Shown here one piece after another: positions 1 to 26,700 of a stretch of 64,000 bases of DNA. Source of the stretch: Carpediemonas membranifera BICM (lineage: Eukaryota; Protista; Fornicata); contig JAHDYR010000007.1 of assembly GCA_019828565.1 (NCBI GenBank), positions 382,373 to 446,372 on the forward strand, in the 5' to 3' direction. Each line of letters opens with the position of its first letter. The first letter of the stretch is position 1. Under the pieces are notes generated by a model. That model was not told where the DNA came from. It saw only the letters and a program-made list of their open reading frames with translations, and did no database searches. The position numbers were made by a program, and so were the translations under genes.

Positions 1-150
1 CGGTGGGAAAATGTGCAGAGACCCGGGAAAGACGTACCTCAGCCTCGTACGACAACGCTTCACGTTCAGAGGGCTCACAACGTCATTGTCATGGTTCCGC
101 AGTTTTGCCCCTAATGCCACGCGAAACGCACGCGAGCAACCGAAAAGAAG

Positions 151-2094
151 ATGGGTGTTGCTGGTTTGAACGGCTTCATCAGGTATGAAGTGGTGAAGGA
201 CGAAGAAATGCTCGCGAGGGACTCTAACTTCAAATCCACACTTATCGGCGATTTACCGCTGGACGAAAGCGTTGCCTTCCTCATTGACTGGCCCAATGCA
301 ATATTTTCCTTCTTAGACAATCTTTCAGCCATCACTAAGCTCGCTAATCGCCCCAGCTTCCCGTGTTTTACTCTGTCCGAGCTGGTATCAGAGACAAAAG
401 CGATGCTTGCACAGCTCGCAGGGCTTCCAAGCACCGTTATATTGTTCGATGACGGCTCAGCCAAGCCGCTGAAGTCTGTACTGAAGGACGCTGACGGCAA
501 CCTGGTCTCCAACAATCTGTTGTTCCCCTTCACCGAAGACGTCGTCGCCAACGGGGACCTCCTCACGCCCCTCCCCGGTACGGGCGAGAGGGGCCGACTA
601 CTGCACTCCGGGACGTTCCCCATCCGCTCCTACCTGATGGACATGACCCCCGAGCTGTGCATCGAGGCGGGCCTCGTCTACCGCTGCGACATCCTCCAGG
701 AGGCCGACACGATGATATGTCGGGCTGTGAAGGAGCTGATAGGTGAGGGAAAGACGCCCGTCATCGTCAGCGCCGACACGGACATGCATCTGGTGCACAC
801 TAAGGCCCACGTCATCGCCCAGGCGACCGATGTTTTCAGCCTCACCGCGGACACTGCCACCGTTCGCACTGTGCGGTTCATGAACTATCTCTTCATGTCC
901 AGGGTCGGCAAGAACGGGAGAAGTCCGAACTACAAGAGGCCAGCGGGATTCATGAACCTTAAGCTGCAAGCTGCCGTCGCTGCTGTTGTCGCGGGCAACG
1001 ACCAGAGCAAGACGATCGTCCGGGGCAAGAGATTCCTCAGCCCCGAACTGACTCGGCACAAGCAGCGGCCGTACGAGGTCATCGACCGCCCCACTGTACA
1101 CGAGGGGGCACAGTACAAGCGGCCCTTCATCACTGTGTTCCGGAGCCTGACCACCTGCAACTGGCTGGACATCGTGCGGGCCGAGGGGGTCGAGCAGGCC
1201 CTGCGGGACACCCTCCTCCTCAGCGGGTTCGACTGCCCCCCGCAGCTGACCGAGACCCGCAGTCTGAAGACCACCGAGGACCTGGTCAACTCGCTCAGTC
1301 CGCCCCTGTTCGCCCTGTTCGGCGGGGGCATCGAAGACTGCATGCTGGGCGATAGTCCCATCCGCTTCCACCCCACCGTCTGCACCCTCGCCAGGAACTT
1401 CGTCAGGGTGCTCTCAGGGGAGGCACCCGACTGCGGCAGGCACATTCGACTGTTCCAGACTCCTGTGCTGAGCTACCTCGGCGGGGCTGTGGATGACAAC
1501 GGCGCGACAGTCGACCGGGCATCCGTGGTCCGGGACTTCGCCGCTGCCGTGGGGCGTGTGGGCGGTCGGTTTGAGTCGTTTGACGACTCGGCCCATGACA
1601 AGAACCGGCTCTTCTCCGAGGACATGCCGTGGGCAGGCAGCTGCTCCATCGCCCGGGACGCCATCCTCGGCCTCATTATTACCAGTCACCTGACCGGCCA
1701 CGCCGAGGTGCTGGGATGGATCTGGGACGTCCTCGACTACGAGCTGCGAGACACGGTCGACCTGCTCGGGTGGGTCATGACTGTGGCGTTCCAGGCCGAC
1801 ACCATGTGCGCCAGTAAGGAAGCATTGACTGACAGCGAGACGAAGCTGGTGTCCGCGGCCGTCAGGAGGGCACGCCCCGGTATGCTCGAGGCGCGAGATC
1901 ACCTGACGAACGAGAACAAGCTGACCTTTGCTCTCGTCGAGGCTTCTTTCTGGGGGCTCGACCAGGTCGTCCACAATGTCCTGCAGGCCATGGTCGTTGC
2001 CGTGAACGCCATGAGGTGGCAGGGATACCCCGACGCCGTCCCGCAGTTCAACGAGGTCGCTGCAATCGTTGATGCTGTCGTGAGAACATTCTGA
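151..2094 (+). CDS. PIN-domain (XPG/FEN1/Asteroid/FAM120-like) nuclease-family protein
   Basis: N-terminal MGVAGL followed by acidic motifs FLIDW, LFDDG, EADTMI, SADTD and GND, in the order expected for the FEN/XPG-type PIN fold. Confidence 0.6.
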   Translation: MGVAGLNGFIRYEVVKDEEMLARDSNFKSTLIGDLPLDESVAFLIDWPNAIFSFLDNLSAITKLANRPSFPCFTLSELVSETKAMLAQLAGLPSTVILFDDGSAKPLKSVLKDADGNLVSNNLLFPFTEDVVANGDLLTPLPGTGERGRLLHSGTFPIRSYLMDMTPELCIEAGLVYRCDILQEADTMICRAVKELIGEGKTPVIVSADTDMHLVHTKAHVIAQATDVFSLTADTATVRTVRFMNYLFMSRVGKNGRSPNYKRPAGFMNLKLQAAVAAVVAGNDQSKTIVRGKRFLSPELTRHKQRPYEVIDRPTVHEGAQYKRPFITVFRSLTTCNWLDIVRAEGVEQALRDTLLLSGFDCPPQLTETRSLKTTEDLVNSLSPPLFALFGGGIEDCMLGDSPIRFHPTVCTLARNFVRVLSGEAPDCGRHIRLFQTPVLSYLGGAVDDNGATVDRASVVRDFAAAVGRVGGRFESFDDSAHDKNRLFSEDMPWAGSCSIARDAILGLIITSHLTGHAEVLGWIWDVLDYELRDTVDLLGWVMTVAFQADTMCASKEALTDSETKLVSAAVRRARPGMLEARDHLTNENKLTFALVEASFWGLDQVVHNVLQAMVVAVNAMRWQGYPDAVPQFNEVAAIVDAVVRTF

Positions 2095-2138
2095 CGTGAC
2101 TGCCGACTGTGTCACGAATTCTGCTCGACAATGCGGCC

Positions 2139-3928
2139 TCATTCAGCATTTACCACCTCTGGCCCGGGAACGGGGTCCTCCATCGTCCGCTCCAGAAGCA
2201 CCGCCAGCCCTTCCACGAGTAACGTCCTCCACCGCTCTGGGACGTTATCGGCGATCTTCCGGGCAATGGCCGAGAGCAACGGGCCGCGGACCTTCTCCCA
2301 CATCCTCCGCTGGAGCTCCCAGGCGTCTGAGACGAGGTCGGTGATGTCAGGGTCCTTTCTCGGGTTGTAAAGAGTGTCACCGAGGGCCCAGTCGACCTTG
2401 CCCTTGATCTCGTCAAGCTGCTTTACGAGGTCGTTGATGGTCTCCGTGATGAGGGGCGGGTAGATATGGATCGCGGTGAAGACGGCAGTCGCCCGGGTCC
2501 TCTTGCCCCAGCAGTCCCGCCGGAACTTCTGGTAGAACATGCTGTGGGCGACGCTCACGCTCAGATCCTTCCTCTGCTGCGGGGTCAGCCAGAGGTGGGC
2601 GGCCACCGCCTCGCGGTCCACGCCCTGGGGCGGCCTATACTGCGTGGAGTAGAACTCGTGACATTCGCCGGCCAGGCGAACAAACGTCTCCTGGTCCCAC
2701 CAGCGATAGTTCAAGGTCTGCAGGTCGTATAGCATCGCCTGCTGAACGTTGGCCAGCGTGTTGTTGAGCGCCAGGGCAATGCTGAGCATCTCGCTCATGA
2801 GCGTCTGACGCTCCTCGTCGCGGAGCTTGGGGAGGTAGGACTGGGTCAGGTCATTGAAGCGTCTGACGGTGCTGTCTCTGGCGTCCTTTGCATCGTGCTC
2901 CAGCGACGTGTGGCTGAGGCAAAGATCGCTCCTGAACTGCCGAATGCACACATTTCTCACGGACTCGACGACCGGCTTCTGCACGACGTAGCTGACCACC
3001 CGACTGTCAAGCTTGTTGATCTCGGCGAGCAGGTCGTCTGGGTCGAATTCAGCCAGGCTCTCGTGCTGGAAGCTGTAGCCCTCGGCGGTGCGGCAGTGGT
3101 CGAACAGAGGGCCCAGCTCATGCGGACTCGCCATGAACAGAGGCAGTAGGTCCTCGCGGATACTTCTGTTATACGCCGAGTTGTCTGCACCGGCGCCGTT
3201 GTTATACCTCGGTAGGAACGCAACGTCGACGATGAAGAAGTCGGCCAGCGTGGAGTTGCCGTTGGTGTCGTTGATCTCGGCCCAAAGTCTGTCAATGCGC
3301 GCTCTGACTTCGACGGCAACCTCCGCCTTCGCGTCTTCCCCGTCGAGGGAGTCGTGGAGCACGACGAGCAGTCGGGTTTTGCCAAGGTGGCCACCGGCAA
3401 CCCGGTTCTCGTGGAGGGACTCGCGAGTGATGGTGCGGAGGTTGGCGAAGAGCTGGCGGAGAAGCGGGTCGCCGTAGTTAGTGGCAACGTTGTGGGTATA
3501 CATGGAGAGCACGACGACAGAGGAGAGGAGGAAGGCCAGCAGGCCGTGTTGAAGGTCGGCGTTGAGGACGTCCCCGACGCCGGAGTTGGAGCCCTGGAAG
3601 TCCAAGAGCCGGAAGCCTCTGCCTTTCTGCTTCTTCCAAACAGGACATCTGCGTCTGCATGCCCTTGGTGGGATGATTGCGATCACAGTTCACATTGAAC
3701 CTGGATCCGAAGAGATTATTCGCCAGGAGGGAGGATCCGGTGCCGCGGGCGCCATAGAAGGAGACCACTGGAATGTCTCCAGCGAGGATCTTCTTGAGCT
3801 TTCGCTTGGAATCATTGTTTTCACTGAGTAACTGAGAGTGGTTGGACAAACAAATACACCTCGTTGCGCCCTTCCGCGTTTCTCTTAACGTTCGTAACGC
3901 GTATGCTGTGTTTGTGTAGGACTCTCAT
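2139..3928 (-). CDS. Divergent Sey1/RHD3/atlastin-like large GTPase (degenerate P-loop)
   Basis: ATG at 3928; 28-nt GT-AG intron at 3832-3859; motifs VVSFYGARGTGSSLLANNLF, TKG, LLDFQG, VLHD, then a helical C-terminus. The frame changes near 3619-3650 (a possible 28-nt intron at 3619-3646, or an indel). Confidence 0.6.
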
Positions 3929-4297
3929 CTGCTTTCACACATGTCACTTGGCCCCAGCTCCTGTGACATTACATGAGTTATGTCCGCCCATGAATAACAA
4001 ATCAGAGCACCCACACTGCACTGGCCAGCCGCGGGGTGTCTCTGAGGCTATGAGAGCAGCGCCTTCAGGGGCAGGCTGGGCAACGGTCTCGAGCTGTGAC
4101 CTGGTCGCAAGATGGCGTGTCCCTCGAGTTGAAGAGAATTTGGCCGGAGCATGAGAACTCGGCCTTCGACTGGCAACACTGACGTCCACTTGGACGTCAG
4201 TACGATGGGGTGAGACCGTCGCTGTGGGAAGCACGTTGAGTGCGTGGCTAAGCTGCACCTCACACTTAAAAGAGCACCACTTCTCCAATCACTTCTG

Positions 4298-4450
4298 ATG
4301 GGAAACGCAGCTCAGTACAACATCGCAGATCAGTCTCCGCGCCCTATTGAGAGCGGGCCTCCTCTTTCCAAGTTTGTAACCGCTGATGGCAAGAAACAAC
4401 AGTACAAGTTCAGCGCCAGTGTCACCAAGCACGTCTCCGGCGAGTTCTAA
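4298..4450 (+). CDS. 50-aa MG-start microprotein (MGNAAQ...HVSGEF)
   Basis: Host-like codon usage; ATAAA at 4457-4461; shares both ends with its neighbour at 4665-4820. Confidence 0.65.
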   Translation: MGNAAQYNIADQSPRPIESGPPLSKFVTADGKKQQYKFSASVTKHVSGEF

Positions 4451-4664
4451 CGAACCATAAAGCCTCTAGTTGCCACTGGCTGCAGATTCATGAGATTTCC
4501 AGCGAGCGTCTCATATTTGGATCCAATTTGGGTGGCGTCCGACAGCTTCACCATTGCTGCTGCGGGATCCTCCCCACACGGGCTAGCTCGTCACACGTGC
4601 CCGCGGTGGTGGTTATCTCAAAACGCAGTTTAGCCAGCATTACATTTTCAGACGCAGAAGACTC

Positions 4665-4820
4665 ATGGGCAACACAGCTGTTGGTGGAAATCCGTCGGCA
4701 ATGACTCCTACTAATCCTCCTAGCGAGCTCCCTGGTTGCCAGGGCAATCACACCGTCCAGGCTCGTGTGGATACGATCGGGGCTGGTATGGGCTTCATTA
4801 AGCGCTCCGGTGAGTTCTAA
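4665..4820 (+). CDS. 51-aa MG-start microprotein (MGNTAV...KRSGEF)
   Basis: Hand-translated ORF, absent from the track; identical SGEF* end with a synonymous Gly codon change relative to the 4298 gene; GTAAA at 4835-4839. Confidence 0.65.
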   Translation: MGNTAVGGNPSAMTPTNPPSELPGCQGNHTVQARVDTIGAGMGFIKRSGEF

Positions 4821-5160
4821 TTCGTAGTGAAGAGGTAAAGCACGATAGTTTGTGCGCAGTGGCAGCCTTTCCCGCCCTGTGACGACTGGCGTAGCACCGC
4901 TCTGCGCTGGGCTCCTCTCTCGGTCCTGCTCGGTCTCCCAGACGCCCCAGCCCAGCAGCGTCCCCGTCGCTCTCGCCCCCTCAAGTGTATCACCTGGCAT
5001 TTCCCGGCCTGCTCCGTGCTGCCTCTGCCGCACGCCTGGACAACTGCCAGTGCTCTCATGAGCCCACCTTGCAACGCCCATTGCGTCATGCGTAGGTGCA
5101 CAACGCCTGTGGTGCCGGCTTTGGGTCATCTGAACATCAATGGTCTTTACCTGGCTGCCA

Positions 5161-5373
5161 TCACTGGTGGGCGGCATATTCCTTCACAGCCGCCAATGCT
5201 GCCCTGCGTGCTATTTTCTCAACGTCATCGGCGGGATCGTGGCATGGCTCCCCCTTTTTACCCGCGGCATAGTCAAGAAGGCGATCAGCTCCGGTGCCGC
5301 ACGCTCTAATAATCATTTCGGCAGCAACTGCCGTGCCAATGATGGAAAGTATGCTCCTGTACGCTTGTGTCAT
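5161..5373 (-). CDS. 70-aa small protein with N-terminal hydrophobic segment and DVEKIARRAA helix
   Basis: Same layout as 5658-5927 and 37231-37497; GTAAA just after the stop on the minus strand. Confidence 0.5.
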   Translation of the reverse strand: MTQAYRSILSIIGTAVAAEMIIRACGTGADRLLDYAAGKKGEPCHDPADDVEKIARRAALAAVKEYAAHQ

Positions 5374-5657
5374 CGCCTGTTCGTTGTTTTCGTCAATAAG
5401 GCCAGTGTCACGGGCGCTGTCACAGAAACTGCAATCAGATGATTGGCTCCCAGTGCTGTTTCGCCGCACTGCAGCGGTCGCATGGCCCTGGTGACACGGC
5501 CTGTATAGCACTACGAGCACGAGCTAGCTTGCCATCACTCGGTGCGGGTCTGAGCGTCCGATGGAGAGTGACACCGCCACTCATTGAACCCACTAGAGGC
5601 CCGTCACACGTCACCCACTCCGTCGAAACAGTCTTTATCACGCAACCCCGCGCTGGC

Positions 5658-5927
5658 CTATCCCGTGGCCTCACGGTCATGCTCTGCCATCTCTGCTACT
5701 ATCTCAGCTGCTTTGTGCTTGGCGAACGCTCTAAGCTGGTCTTCCGTCATATCCTCGAGGTATTGTTTCCCTGGCGGCGATGTCACTTTCTCGTTCGCCT
5801 TTACGCTCTTCTTCTTGCGGGATGTGATGAAATTGAAGACAATGAGCATGTATTTCTCCGCAATTGAACCGACAACAAAACTAGCACTGAGCCCAACAAC
5901 CCACACAGCAACTCTCGAAGGAGACAT
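5658..5927 (-). CDS. 89-aa small single-pass membrane protein
   Basis: N-terminal TM (VAVWVVGLSASFVVGSIA), basic patch, C-terminal charged helix; ATAAA downstream. Confidence 0.55.
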   Translation of the reverse strand: MSPSRVAVWVVGLSASFVVGSIAEKYMLIVFNFITSRKKKSVKANEKVTSPPGKQYLEDMTEDQLRAFAKHKAAEIVAEMAEHDREATG

Positions 5928-6133
5928 TCCTCTTCTGCCCTCTGTTGGCGTGTCACAGGACCATGCTACTGTGACAATGAGCGAGATGACCACGGACTAC
6001 ACCACCTTACCTTACAGGACTACAGTGACATCGCCCCGGCACCGTTGTGCCCACTGACGTTGGATAAAGTGTGATGCTTGCTATTTATGGGACCGCGTTA
6101 TGTATATATGTATATCGTCCCAGTCCTGCCCCC

Positions 6134-7762
6134 CTATGTACACAAGACCAGCGGCTTGACGTCCTCAGCGACAAACCAGGCCGGCGTCTTCCTCCGCATC
6201 GGTGCGGGCGTTCTCACCTCCTTCTCATCACTGCCGAGCACGGTGTCGCCCGCTGCCGGGTCGTTTTGGCCCATCACGAGCCATGTGCCGTCCGCCAAGC
6301 CGAGCCACAGCGCGGCCATGAACCACCGCACGCGTGTGACCTCTCCCGGCACACTGGCCTCGAGTATGGCGTCCGACTCGGCCGCAGAGTCAAAGTTGCA
6401 CTCCGGCAGGAGGCAGAGGGACTCTGTCCGGTCGGCCCGGACGACGATGGTGAACTCGAAGACAGAGGCGAGCCCGATAAACAGACGCTTGCATGGGAAG
6501 GGCAGGGCCAGCTTCTCGGGGATCGGGCTCTCGCGTTGGGTTACGAGCAAGTGCCTGAGACTGTCGCTCGGTCGGCCCGATAGGTAGGTAGTCCCGTTCG
6601 CTGCGAACAGGGAGAAATCGTGGAAGATACGGACGTCGTCGACCGGGAGGCCGATCTTAGTAAACTTCTCGGCGAAAAAGCACGGGCCAATCCCGAGCCG
6701 CCCCGAAGTGTTGTCGCCGACGACGACCGCCACACGCCTATGCCTGAGCACAGTGGCGCCGGCCCTGTCGATGACATACTTGGGGACGAACCGGGGGGGC
6801 AGGGGCACCGGGATGAAGAGCTTCGCGTCGGACAACTTGGGCCTCATGCGGGGCGAGTCGACGCCCGCCCCGAGGGAGTTCGAGTAGTTGAGCCCGGCGA
6901 CGGCTACGCCAACCCTGGTGACGATGAACGTGTGGTACCGCCCCATTGCCACGTGGTGGATGGCCCTGCTCCGCTCCCACGGGCCGAATGTCCGCTCCAG
7001 GGCTGCGAGCTTGGGCGCCTCGGCGAACTCGACGCGGGTTGGGACGGAGGCGTCGGCATAGCCAATGCCCAGGGCGCCCGACGAGGAGTCGCCCCAAGCG
7101 TAGAGGCCCCGGGCTGTCTGGGCAATGACCCCTCCGACCTTGTTGGTGAAGATCTTCTGTACCGCGTGTACCTTGACTCTGCGGTATGTCGGGATCGTCT
7201 GCCCCAGACCGAGGCCCGTGAAGCCATACCAGTTGGCACCGCATGAAAAGACACGGCCGCCGTAGAGGCGGAGGGCGACGAGGCTGCGGAAAGTGGACCT
7301 CTCGGGGAATAGGTAGGTACACTTGCCGTTGCTGAGGGAGTCGGAGAGCGCCTTGAAGCACTGTCGCGAGAGGAACCAGAGGGGCCTCGTTTCAGCCGCG
7401 TAACCGGCCACGCCAGTGTTCGTGTCGTTGATGATGACCTCACTGGCGGCCAGGTCCGGGTCTGCTTCCGCTGCGAGGAGCAGGGCCCATATCGTATGGC
7501 TGGAAAGCTCAGGAAATGTGGGCGGTGGCGGAAGGAGAGGAGGGGCGGAAATCCTGTCCAGATCAACAACTTCAGATGAAATGGACGAAGAAAACGTGGA
7601 GCCCGTGCTGGAGAGATGGCATGAGAACTCGGCGGATGGAATCTCTCTCTTCTCGGCGACAATCTCCACCGACTGTGCAGCAGAAGAAACGGAGGACGGT
7701 GCACTTGAGGATGAATATCGGCGCTTAATGCGCTTTGGAATCAGCCTCGTTGCTATCACCAT
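6134..7762 (-). CDS. RCC1/BLIP-II-like beta-propeller repeat protein
   Basis: Repeats VFSCGANWYGFTGLG, LYAWGDSSSGALGIG, VAGLNYSNSLGAG, VVGDNTSGRLGIG. Confidence 0.75.
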   Translation of the reverse strand: MVIATRLIPKRIKRRYSSSSAPSSVSSAAQSVEIVAEKREIPSAEFSCHLSSTGSTFSSSISSEVVDLDRISAPPLLPPPPTFPELSSHTIWALLLAAEADPDLAASEVIINDTNTGVAGYAAETRPLWFLSRQCFKALSDSLSNGKCTYLFPERSTFRSLVALRLYGGRVFSCGANWYGFTGLGLGQTIPTYRRVKVHAVQKIFTNKVGGVIAQTARGLYAWGDSSSGALGIGYADASVPTRVEFAEAPKLAALERTFGPWERSRAIHHVAMGRYHTFIVTRVGVAVAGLNYSNSLGAGVDSPRMRPKLSDAKLFIPVPLPPRFVPKYVIDRAGATVLRHRRVAVVVGDNTSGRLGIGPCFFAEKFTKIGLPVDDVRIFHDFSLFAANGTTYLSGRPSDSLRHLLVTQRESPIPEKLALPFPCKRLFIGLASVFEFTIVVRADRTESLCLLPECNFDSAAESDAILEASVPGEVTRVRWFMAALWLGLADGTWLVMGQNDPAAGDTVLGSDEKEVRTPAPMRRKTPAWFVAEDVKPLVLCT

Positions 7763-11365: not shown

Positions 11366-12597
11366 ACTACTGGCCAGTGCAGTGATTTGCCGCTGTTCGA
11401 GGTGTTGGCTCGATGGGCGCCCCATCAGAACAGCTTTTGATTGTTTCGCGATTTTCCCGGGTCGCCCCTTGACGTTGTCCGAGCGGTGTCAGGCCGGTTA
11501 ACAGGGACGGTGGGCAGCAACAAGCACCTGGTCAGGTGGGCGGGTGGCGGGCTTCGGGCGCTAGATAAGAACAACCAACCAATCGACATTTTGGAATTGT
11601 GGAAAATGACGGGAATTACGGCAAAGCTTGGGTGTATAGGTGAAATGGGGGCGTCTGCTGCCGTTTTAGGGTGGGAGCCATCCGAAATTTGGAGGAAATT
11701 TTGTTCTTGGGTAGCGGTCCTGGCGGAAGATGCTTCAAGTATAGCCATCGAAGAAGCTACAAAGCTACAAACAAGCGTAAATGGACGAAAAGAACAGCTA
11801 GATAGTTTACAAAAGGAACTGAGAGAAGATCTAGAAGAGTCTGGAGATGAAAGTGATGATTATGCCTATAAGAGTGACTGTTGCCACACTAATGACTGGT
11901 GCTGCTGTTACTAGGTAAAGAGATGGCTGTAGGAAGCTACAAACTAATGCTAAAGATCAGGAAGCAAGAGCAGGATGCTACTCCACAGCATAAGCAGCCG
12001 CACATGATCAGAAAGTCGCTAATAGATCTGTGATTTTTCATAGAACCCTTCGTGTAGCCAAGCATTGGTGACATGAGTGGGCTTTGCATGTTTGTGATGG
12101 AATTCTCGAATGAGAGTGTTGTGGTCTCGAAGCTGTCGGAAAAAAGTCTGATCTTTGGCGACTGATCTCCGATTGTTTCAGAACATCACCCTCGATGGGC
12201 CCTCAGACCATGCCAGTTGGCTGGGTGAGTCGTCAGGGGGCACTTTTTCCGCGACCCTTTTTTTGCGCAATAGTCCGAAGCGGTCACGCAGCCGGCGATC
12301 TCGCGCACTAATTTTGTCGCTGGCTAAGAACTGAGCAGAATCATGTAGACCGACGCCTAGCGCTCTCCCGAGCCCCGAGCAAGATTTTTTCCCAAGGATC
12401 CGCAGGGCAAGCACAAGATCTTGTCCACTCCTGATCAAGACACGCAAAAATGAACAATGCCGCAAATGACTAGTTTGCTGGTATAGAGCACTTGTAGCCC
12501 ATGTTCTGTTGCTTCAGATTTGTGACACGTCTTCGGTTTTCAACCGGAGTCGTCAAAGTGGTCTTGACTGGTCGTCATCTTGCACTGTCTTTCACGA

Positions 12598-26154: not shown

Positions 26155-26301
26155 ATGGGTCAGGGTAGTTCGAATACTTCTTCTGGTGCTGATAACTTCG
26201 TCGACAGCGGTAACGGTGTTTCATGCTGCGGCATTGACGACGGCACCAAGATCCTCGACGGCGTCGATAACAAGCTTACCATCGCCATTGGCCACTTCTA
26301 A
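26155..26301 (+). CDS. 48-aa putatively N-myristoylated microprotein (MGQGSS...IAIGHF)
   Basis: Hand-translated; MGxxxS motif; host codon usage; A-rich 5' context; ATAAA at 26317-26321. Confidence 0.65.
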   Translation: MGQGSSNTSSGADNFVDSGNGVSCCGIDDGTKILDGVDNKLTIAIGHF

Positions 26302-26700
26302 ACGGCGTGAGCAAGCATAAACGGACTAATGCTATAGTTGATGAGCTTGTAGTTGAAATGCGCAATGTCGTCAAGGCACTTGCACAAATTGATCTGTCCC
26401 CAACTGGTGGACGGAATTCGCGGGGGGCGATATCAGATGCTGACCCCAAAAGAAGCGCCAGAAGTGACCGGGGCGAGACAATGCATAGTTGCCCGGACCT
26501 TTTGGTTTCATTGTTCCGACGACATGTGGTGGAATACCACCCCGCCGCCGTGCCTGCGTCGCTCGCGGGCAGCGGCTGGCCGAGACACCAACCAGCATTT
26601 CCACCACGCCACACCACGCCACATGTGCTGATCTGATCATGATTCACTCAACTTGCATTCAGCTACGAGCATGTCATGATGGATTCGCCCAGCTGGCCCA

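Follow-up and report, generated by a model that had tools for sequence, protein, structure and literature searches.

The ARF GTPases, recoverin and calcineurin B are classical substrates of N-myristoyltransferase (NMT), and Gly2 followed by Asn3 is the pattern that they display. In another group of acylated proteins, which includes BASP1/NAP-22, MARCKS and Leishmania HASPB, Gly2 is acylated as well. There, the body of the protein is hydrophilic, of low complexity and disordered, and association with the membrane relies on the lipid only. Here, we describe a family of very short genes whose predicted products recall both groups, in Carpediemonas membranifera, a free-living relative of Giardia. 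The genome of this organism measures 24.2 Mb in 69 contigs, with a GC content of 57.1%, and its published annotation lists about 8,300 proteins (PMC8516963).

The comparison with the described systems goes as follows. With the ARF GTPases, the recoverin/NCS proteins and calcineurin B, the microproteins have a Met-Gly-Asn start in common, frequently followed by Ser at position 6, and a myristoyl anchor added during translation would be expected. However, those proteins are folded, have masses of 15-25 kDa and are conserved across eukaryotes, whereas the microproteins are 30-51 aa long, have no predicted structure and gave no homologues in our searches. With BASP1/NAP-22, MARCKS and HASPB, the likeness consists of the disordered body and of an acylated Gly2, which is predicted in the present case. 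In contrast to the microproteins, these three are several times longer, contain basic effector domains or repeats and lack a conserved C-terminal G-x-Phe. No sequence similarity links them to the family.

Two family members stand in tandem on the plus strand of the window, the whole 64-kb stretch of DNA that was analysed, in which the GC content is 53-68%. ORF1 (positions 4298-4450) encodes 50 aa, MGNAA...SGEF, and ORF2 (4665-4820) encodes 51 aa, MGNTA...SGEF; both stop at TAA. Coordinates and translations are exactly those given in a first-pass annotation of this DNA, which had also pointed to synonymous codon differences at the shared ends. These differences are real. The Met-Gly start is written ATG GGA in ORF1 and ATG GGC in ORF2, and the C-terminal Gly GGC and GGT, respectively. 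The start DNA common to both ORFs, ATGGGNAACNCAGCT, is found at these two places only in the 64 kb, for an expectation of 0.05 in shuffled DNA. The same is true of the common end DNA, TCCGGYGAGTTCTAA, for which 0.2 occurrences are expected from shuffles. At the protein level, sharing within the pair is restricted to the MGN.A start and the SGEF-TAA end. BLASTP detects no similarity between the two cores at E <= 100, and a forced alignment yields 26% identity.

The genome (24,237,836 bases, 69 contigs) was scanned with the pattern ATGGG-(113-143 nt)-GGNNNNTTYTAA, corresponding to 43-52 codons and to an end in GGN-NNN-TTY-TAA, and the reversed pattern was used as a control. Such a genome-wide pattern count had been put forward in the first-pass annotation; it gave 18 matches versus 2 in the reversed control. 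Moreover, 14 of the 18 matches are in frame and open, where about one is expected. None of the four matches that fail in frame or openness has an MG[NQA] start, and all MG[NQA] matches pass. Once the second copies of ORF1 and ORF2, as well as the C-terminus of one long ORF, had been discarded, 11 distinct members were left. A scan with shorter spacing (23-42 codons) returned mostly noise (12 matches versus 10 in the control). Its three in-frame open matches all begin with MG[NQ], and they add three members of 30-39 aa. Allowing other stops brought four more members ending in TAG and none ending in TGA. In addition, a tandem trio of MGN/MGQ microprotein genes was found on the minus strand of contig C4 (230878-232062). 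One gene of the trio ends G-G-F and the other two GGM and SSFPK, so that the family is wider than its G-x-F definition.

Overall, at least 20 members of 30-51 aa were verified on at least 10 contigs, and 18 of the 20 end with G-x-F. Besides contig C8, members were found on C4, C5, C6, C26, C37, C39, C63, C67 and C68. The family is thus scattered over the genome, and tandem sets occur on C8 and C4. The Met-Gly start, the Gly at position -3 and the Phe at position -1 were fixed by the search pattern, and their invariance is therefore partly by construction. Among the 286 window ORFs of 30-90 aa that start with ATG, a G-x-F end is present in only three, and all three start with MG and measure 48-51 aa. 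The third window member lies on the plus strand at 26155-26301 (48 aa, MGQGSS...IGHF, stop TAA), and ATAAAC is found at 26317-26322. It is confirmed that ORF1 and ORF2 belong to an unannotated microprotein family, beyond coincidence. The existence of such a family had been proposed from this one locus, and the 20 members retrieved by the genome-wide scans bear it out.

The cores of the members are highly divergent, since protein searches of the own genome with ORF1 or ORF2 singly matched only the queries and their duplicates. A profile search of the own genome recovered the training members and no new ones. The earlier statement that only the termini are shared holds for the ORF1/ORF2 pair, but it does not extend to the whole family. 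Indeed, a subset carries a weak C-terminal module, V-[ST]-[ST]-D-G...[RK]-x-x-G-x-F, in which V-[ST]-[ST]-D-G is located about 14 residues before the end. Because members of this subset have the module in the form V-[ST]-[ST]-D-G...R-x-x-G-G-F in common, common descent is pointed to.

Transcription of the locus was followed in contigs from four runs (X1-X4) of one 2017 study, presumed to represent RNA, in which strand and ends were read from adapter and poly(T) remnants. A 24-nt 5' tag, absent from the genome, was found in runs X2-X4 and includes GACCTTGGCTGTCACTCA. This stretch is the adapter that was trimmed off Vertis Biotechnologie 454 cDNA libraries (PMC4176332). As the tag contains the Vertis adapter and is absent from the genome, its junction with genomic DNA marks both the 5' end and the strand of an RNA. 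A spliced leader was considered as the source of the tag and rejected, on account of its absence from the genome, the variable join sites without a preceding AG and the Vertis 454 adapter that it contains.

Upstream of ORF1, the tag joins the genome at 4262 in X2, at 4264 in X3 and at 4257 in X4. These 5' ends of a sense RNA carrying ORF1 (4257-4264, plus strand, in gcACCTCACACTTAAAAG) are a likely transcription start. They are positioned 34-41 nt upstream of the ATG with no ATG in between, and the ATG at 4298 is the first one downstream. Contig depth over ORF1 reaches 53, 25 and 7 in the three tagged runs, in which the large genes on either side are covered less deeply. ORF2 is also covered by RNA contigs, and its only oriented end is antisense. 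In X2 and X4, the reverse-complemented tag directly follows position 4913, so that an RNA of the minus strand, antisense to ORF2, has its 5' end there. With regard to the RNA coverage check suggested earlier, ORF1 is carried by a sense RNA that begins about 35 nt ahead of its ATG, and for ORF2 no sense-oriented end was seen. An AT-rich element is absent upstream of the antisense end, and, up to ORF1, neither an evident ORF nor an [AG]TAAA signal is seen in the antisense transcript.

Across the family, the 30 nt preceding the ATG are rich in A and C and poor in T and G, with a T-rich stretch further upstream. Words of the CACAAA/CAAAAC type recur upstream of the members. The segment CACCTCACAC, which holds the mapped ORF1 5' ends, appears to resemble these words. 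Similarly, CTCAAAACGCA, located 41-48 nt upstream of the ORF2 ATG, looks akin to the leader of the C63 member.

Two small genes are encoded on the minus strand next to the pair. For the 70-aa gene (5373-5161), the 5' adapter is found at 5430 and a poly(T) remnant near 5137; for the 89-aa gene (5927-5658), the corresponding positions are 6075 and near 5630. At these places, the longest ORFs begin with GTG (at 5520 and 5993) and extend beyond the RNA or beyond the first ATG. On the other side of the pair, a 28-nt intron, GTTTGT...CTCAG (3824-3851, minus strand), lies in the 5' part of a 515-aa gene. It is removed in an X1 contig and kept in X2, and the first exon of this gene would start near 3928.

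At the 3' side, [AG]TAAA follows both stops, at 4457 and 4835, as the first-pass annotation had noticed. ATAAAG (4457-4462, plus strand), 6 nt after the ORF1 stop, and GTAAAG (4835-4840, plus strand), 14 nt after the ORF2 stop, are the probable polyadenylation signals of the two genes. In the window, 13 of the 29 [AG]TAAAG sites are located 0-29 nt past an ORF of at least 50 aa. For the family, [AG]TAAA is found within 35 nt past the stop in 17 of the 20 members (p ~1e-25). In addition, the cDNA contigs of the two neighbouring minus-strand small genes terminate in poly(T) stretches, some 10-20 nt past GTAAAG/ATAAAG. From this association with ORFs and from the poly(T)-ending cDNA contigs next door, [AG]TAAAG therefore behaves as a polyadenylation signal. 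However, RNA contigs overrun the ATAAAG of ORF1, extending beyond 4475 and as far as at least 4671, and its use as a cleavage signal is therefore only putative. In the other genomic copy of the locus, described below, the contigs that continue past the ORF1 signal enter the LTR of a retroelement. Two additional ORFs of the window have [AG]TAAAG at or overlapping their stop, one of 88 aa with an MGGKGQ start (37497-37231, minus strand) and one of 102 aa (11606-11914, plus strand). They may be further unannotated mini-genes.

The codons used at the fixed residues are varied: GGA, GGC or GGT for Gly2, AAC or AAT for Asn3, all four Gly codons at position -3, TTC or TTT for Phe, and TAA or TAG as stops. 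This synonymous variation argues for a constraint acting at the protein level. The in-frame codon log-likelihood of ORF1 is 0.315 per codon, within the range of coding chunks. The score of ORF2 (-0.04) is borderline, as is that of the expressed neighbouring 70-aa gene. In the family, GC3 is 0.57, compared with 0.82 in long genes; its codon preference is negative and its usage is not gene-like. The two expressed neighbouring small genes have a GC3 as low as that of the family. TGA is never used as a stop by the 20 members, which end in TAA or TAG only, versus 7 of 19 long ORFs. Long genes use the three stops about equally, unlike the microprotein family. Family members occupy the intervals, a few hundred bases long, that larger ORFs leave free. 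Protein profile searches and a metagenome scan found no orthologue in another species on which purifying selection could be based.

Position 3 is Asn in ORF1 and ORF2 and either Asn or Gln in 18 of the 20 members. At position 6, Ser or Thr is present in 9 of the 20, a 2.6-fold enrichment (p = 0.004) over the 17% that these two residues represent overall, and Gly or Asn is found in four more. In the two window ORFs, position 6 is occupied by Gln (ORF1) and Val (ORF2), and not by the preferred Ser/Thr. An NMT gene is present in the genome, as shown by an NMT_C match (PF02799, E = 3.6e-41) at C54:1210505-1211056, inside a 428-aa ORF. In outline, the N-terminus of the microproteins would thus fit that of an NMT substrate. 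A literature search returned no paper combining Carpediemonas with myristoylation.

The members contain 17% Gly and are rich in Ser, Thr, Asn, Pro and Asp. An AF2 model made with the family alignment has a pLDDT of 61 and a pTM of 0.14, without any secondary structure. At the C-terminus, about half of the members have a basic residue 2-3 positions ahead of the Gly. The end is G-G-F in 11 of the 20, some of which read R-x-R-x-x-G-G-F. Other ends are G-E-F, as in ORF1 and ORF2, G-H-F, G-N-F, G-A-F and G-S-F.

The microproteins have no match in Pfam, and the exact sequences of ORF1 and ORF2 are absent from about 15 billion proteins. A word-index search with the family alignment against 5.8 billion clusters gave no match. 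The exhaustive profile search of 1.84 billion representatives returned a single match, P0001, an unrelated 483-aa repeat protein. Nothing was found in the ESM Atlas, a metagenome scan that used the neighbouring gene for synteny revealed no true relative, and Rfam gave nothing credible over positions 3700-6200. Of four neighbouring ORFs compared with Pfam, three had no match and the fourth contains RCC1 repeats. The suggestion of a RiPP-like precursor, made in the first-pass annotation, finds no support: no modifying enzyme was matched among the four neighbouring ORFs scanned, and the members are spread over at least 10 contigs.

On balance, we lean towards the view that the locus consists of two mini-genes in tandem, each with signals of its own, from a lineage-restricted family that encodes myristoyl-anchored, disordered peptides with a C-terminal docking motif. 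Each gene would comprise a short A/C-rich leader, an ATG-GGN-AAY start and an unstructured core rich in Gly, Ser, Thr, Asn and Pro. Its 3' part would consist of the C-terminal G-x-F, then TAA or TAG, then [AG]TAAA within about 35 nt. After removal of the initiator Met, the N-myristoyltransferase of the organism would acylate Gly2; this lipid step is predicted from the sequence rule and from the presence of the enzyme gene. The disordered peptide, held on the membrane, could then expose a free [RK]-x(1-2)-G-x-Phe-COOH, which a shared candidate reader would recognise as a short docking motif. We propose that the core drifts fast because it is largely a spacer of constrained length. Translation, lipidation and a docking role of G-x-F are all inferred. 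A bolder version would have at least 20 myristoyl-anchored structureless peptides whose [RK]-x-x-G-x-Phe-COOH end is recognised by a single receptor or enzyme dedicated to it, the core serving as a specificity repertoire. We regard this version as decidedly doubtful.

The main rival to myristoyl-anchored docking peptides is that the loci are transcribed and that the peptides are young de novo ORFs, weakly constrained and with little or no function. Their ends would be tolerated or easily born, in the form of a Kozak-like ATGG and of an A-rich stop and poly(A) region. The intergenic-like GC3 and codon preference, which set the family apart from long genes, agree with this idea, as do the unalignable cores and the lack of relatives among 5.8 billion and 1.84 billion protein entries. 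In addition, the RNA start of ORF1 adjoins the probable divergent start of its minus-strand neighbour, so that the ORF1 RNA could be a by-product of a bidirectional promoter. Nevertheless, we consider such an origin unlikely, and the size and regularity of the family weaken it. Twenty independent births converging on MG[NQ], G-x-F and 30-51 aa are very improbable given the 18 matches versus 2 in the control. The module common to a subset points to common descent, the varied codons of the fixed residues indicate a constraint on the protein, and the low GC3 is found equally in the two expressed small genes next door. That the ORFs are not genes at all is scarcely credible. Chance ORFs are ruled out by the excess of the pattern over its control. 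The other way of not being genes would be as first exons, whose ends (G|GTGAGT, G|GCGAGT with TCTAAY) would be a splice donor and a branch point. In ORF2, the terminal sequence GGTGAGTTCTAAT combines a textbook donor with a branch-point-like CTAAT behind it, and the 28-nt intron at 3824-3851 shows that introns of this size exist in the genome. However, RNA contigs cross 4440-4480 and 4810-4850 without a gap, although the 28-nt intron is removed in the same data, and other members end in GGNGGNTTY without a GT donor. The splice-donor reading of GGTGAGT/GGCGAGT was therefore rejected, the contigs spanning 4262-4648 and 4642-4913 containing no gap.

The remaining alternatives accept that the peptides are made and concern the fate of their two ends. 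They could be soluble, disordered and unmyristoylated, the MGN start and the G-x-F end having other roles, such as N-terminal acetylation or stability, or an R-x-x-G-type C-degron. R-x-x-G C-degrons do resemble the combination of basic residue and Gly at the end of about half of the members, and position 6 is not Ser/Thr in 11 of the 20, including both window ORFs. With Gly2-Asn3 being the classical NMT pattern, Ser/Thr enriched at position 6 and an NMT gene in the genome, we rate the absence of the lipid as rather unlikely. Alternatively, the peptides could be precursors of conjugatable or processed tags. The C-terminal residue would be cut off behind Gly-Gly, as happens with ubiquitin-like precursors or bacterial Pup, and the lipidated peptide would be attached to targets; alternatively, a peptide would be released as a signal. 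Ubiquitin-like precursors and Pup have a short tail of Gly-Gly plus one residue, which is also the end of the G-G-F members. The R-x-R-x-x-G-G-F ends recall the RLRGG tail of ubiquitin plus one extra residue, and Pup, like the microproteins, is disordered. Unlike in these systems, Gly-Gly is not conserved in the family, as the G-E-F, G-H-F, G-N-F, G-A-F and G-S-F ends attest. Furthermore, the AF2 model lacks a beta-grasp fold, the N-terminus bears a putative lipid motif, and genes for modifying or processing enzymes were not found among the four neighbouring ORFs compared with Pfam. A tag precursor thus seems very unlikely.

The ORFs are absent from about 15 billion proteins and profiles find no relatives, which suggests that a class of very short, probably lipid-anchored proteins has been missed. 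If made and acylated, they would provide a simple example, open to testing, of a protein pared down to lipid anchor, spacer and C-terminal motif. At the genome scale, mini-genes equipped with a start and a poly(A) signal of their own would fill apparent gene gaps of a compact genome. If one reader serves all members, a deep-branching eukaryote would possess a membrane-tethering or tagging system that has not been described before. What is new here is the mapping of RNA 5' ends, the link with a poly(A) signal and the duplication and retroelement context of this divergent S-G-E-F tandem couple.

With regard to this context, window positions 1-4648 are an inverted copy of C8:360246-364938 (99.9% identity), and positions 4642-5641 an inverted copy of C8:348766-349762 (99.5% identity). 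As the surrounding segment is duplicated on C8, ORF1 and ORF2 each occur twice in the genome. The duplicated segment measures 5.6 kb and contains both microprotein genes and the 515-aa gene. Its two copies are inverted and about 17 kb apart on the same contig, which reflects either a very recent duplication or an assembly effect. In the other copy, ORF1 and ORF2 are 10,483 bp apart (C8:349763-360245). The intervening DNA is an LTR retroelement: its LTRs (TGTGG...CTACA) measure 43 bp, a duplicated 5-bp target, CATTT, flanks it on either side, and it has a chromodomain-like integrase end. In the window, the target site (CATTT at 4643-4647) is empty, whereas it is filled in the other copy; hence, the tandem order ORF1-ORF2 of the window is the uninterrupted one. 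In the interrupted copy, ORF2 is severed from its likely start region. RNA contigs support the uninterrupted junction as well as both junctions of the element. ORF2 was also considered as a part of the retroelement, and this was rejected: the 43-bp LTR and its 5-bp target duplication stop 17 nt short of the ATG, on its upstream side, and the site is empty in the window. Finally, the LTR element harbours a second element of 6.04 kb, whose terminal repeats measure 86 bp. At least 10 copies of this second element, at 100% identity, are found on other contigs, and these identical copies suggest that it transposed very recently.
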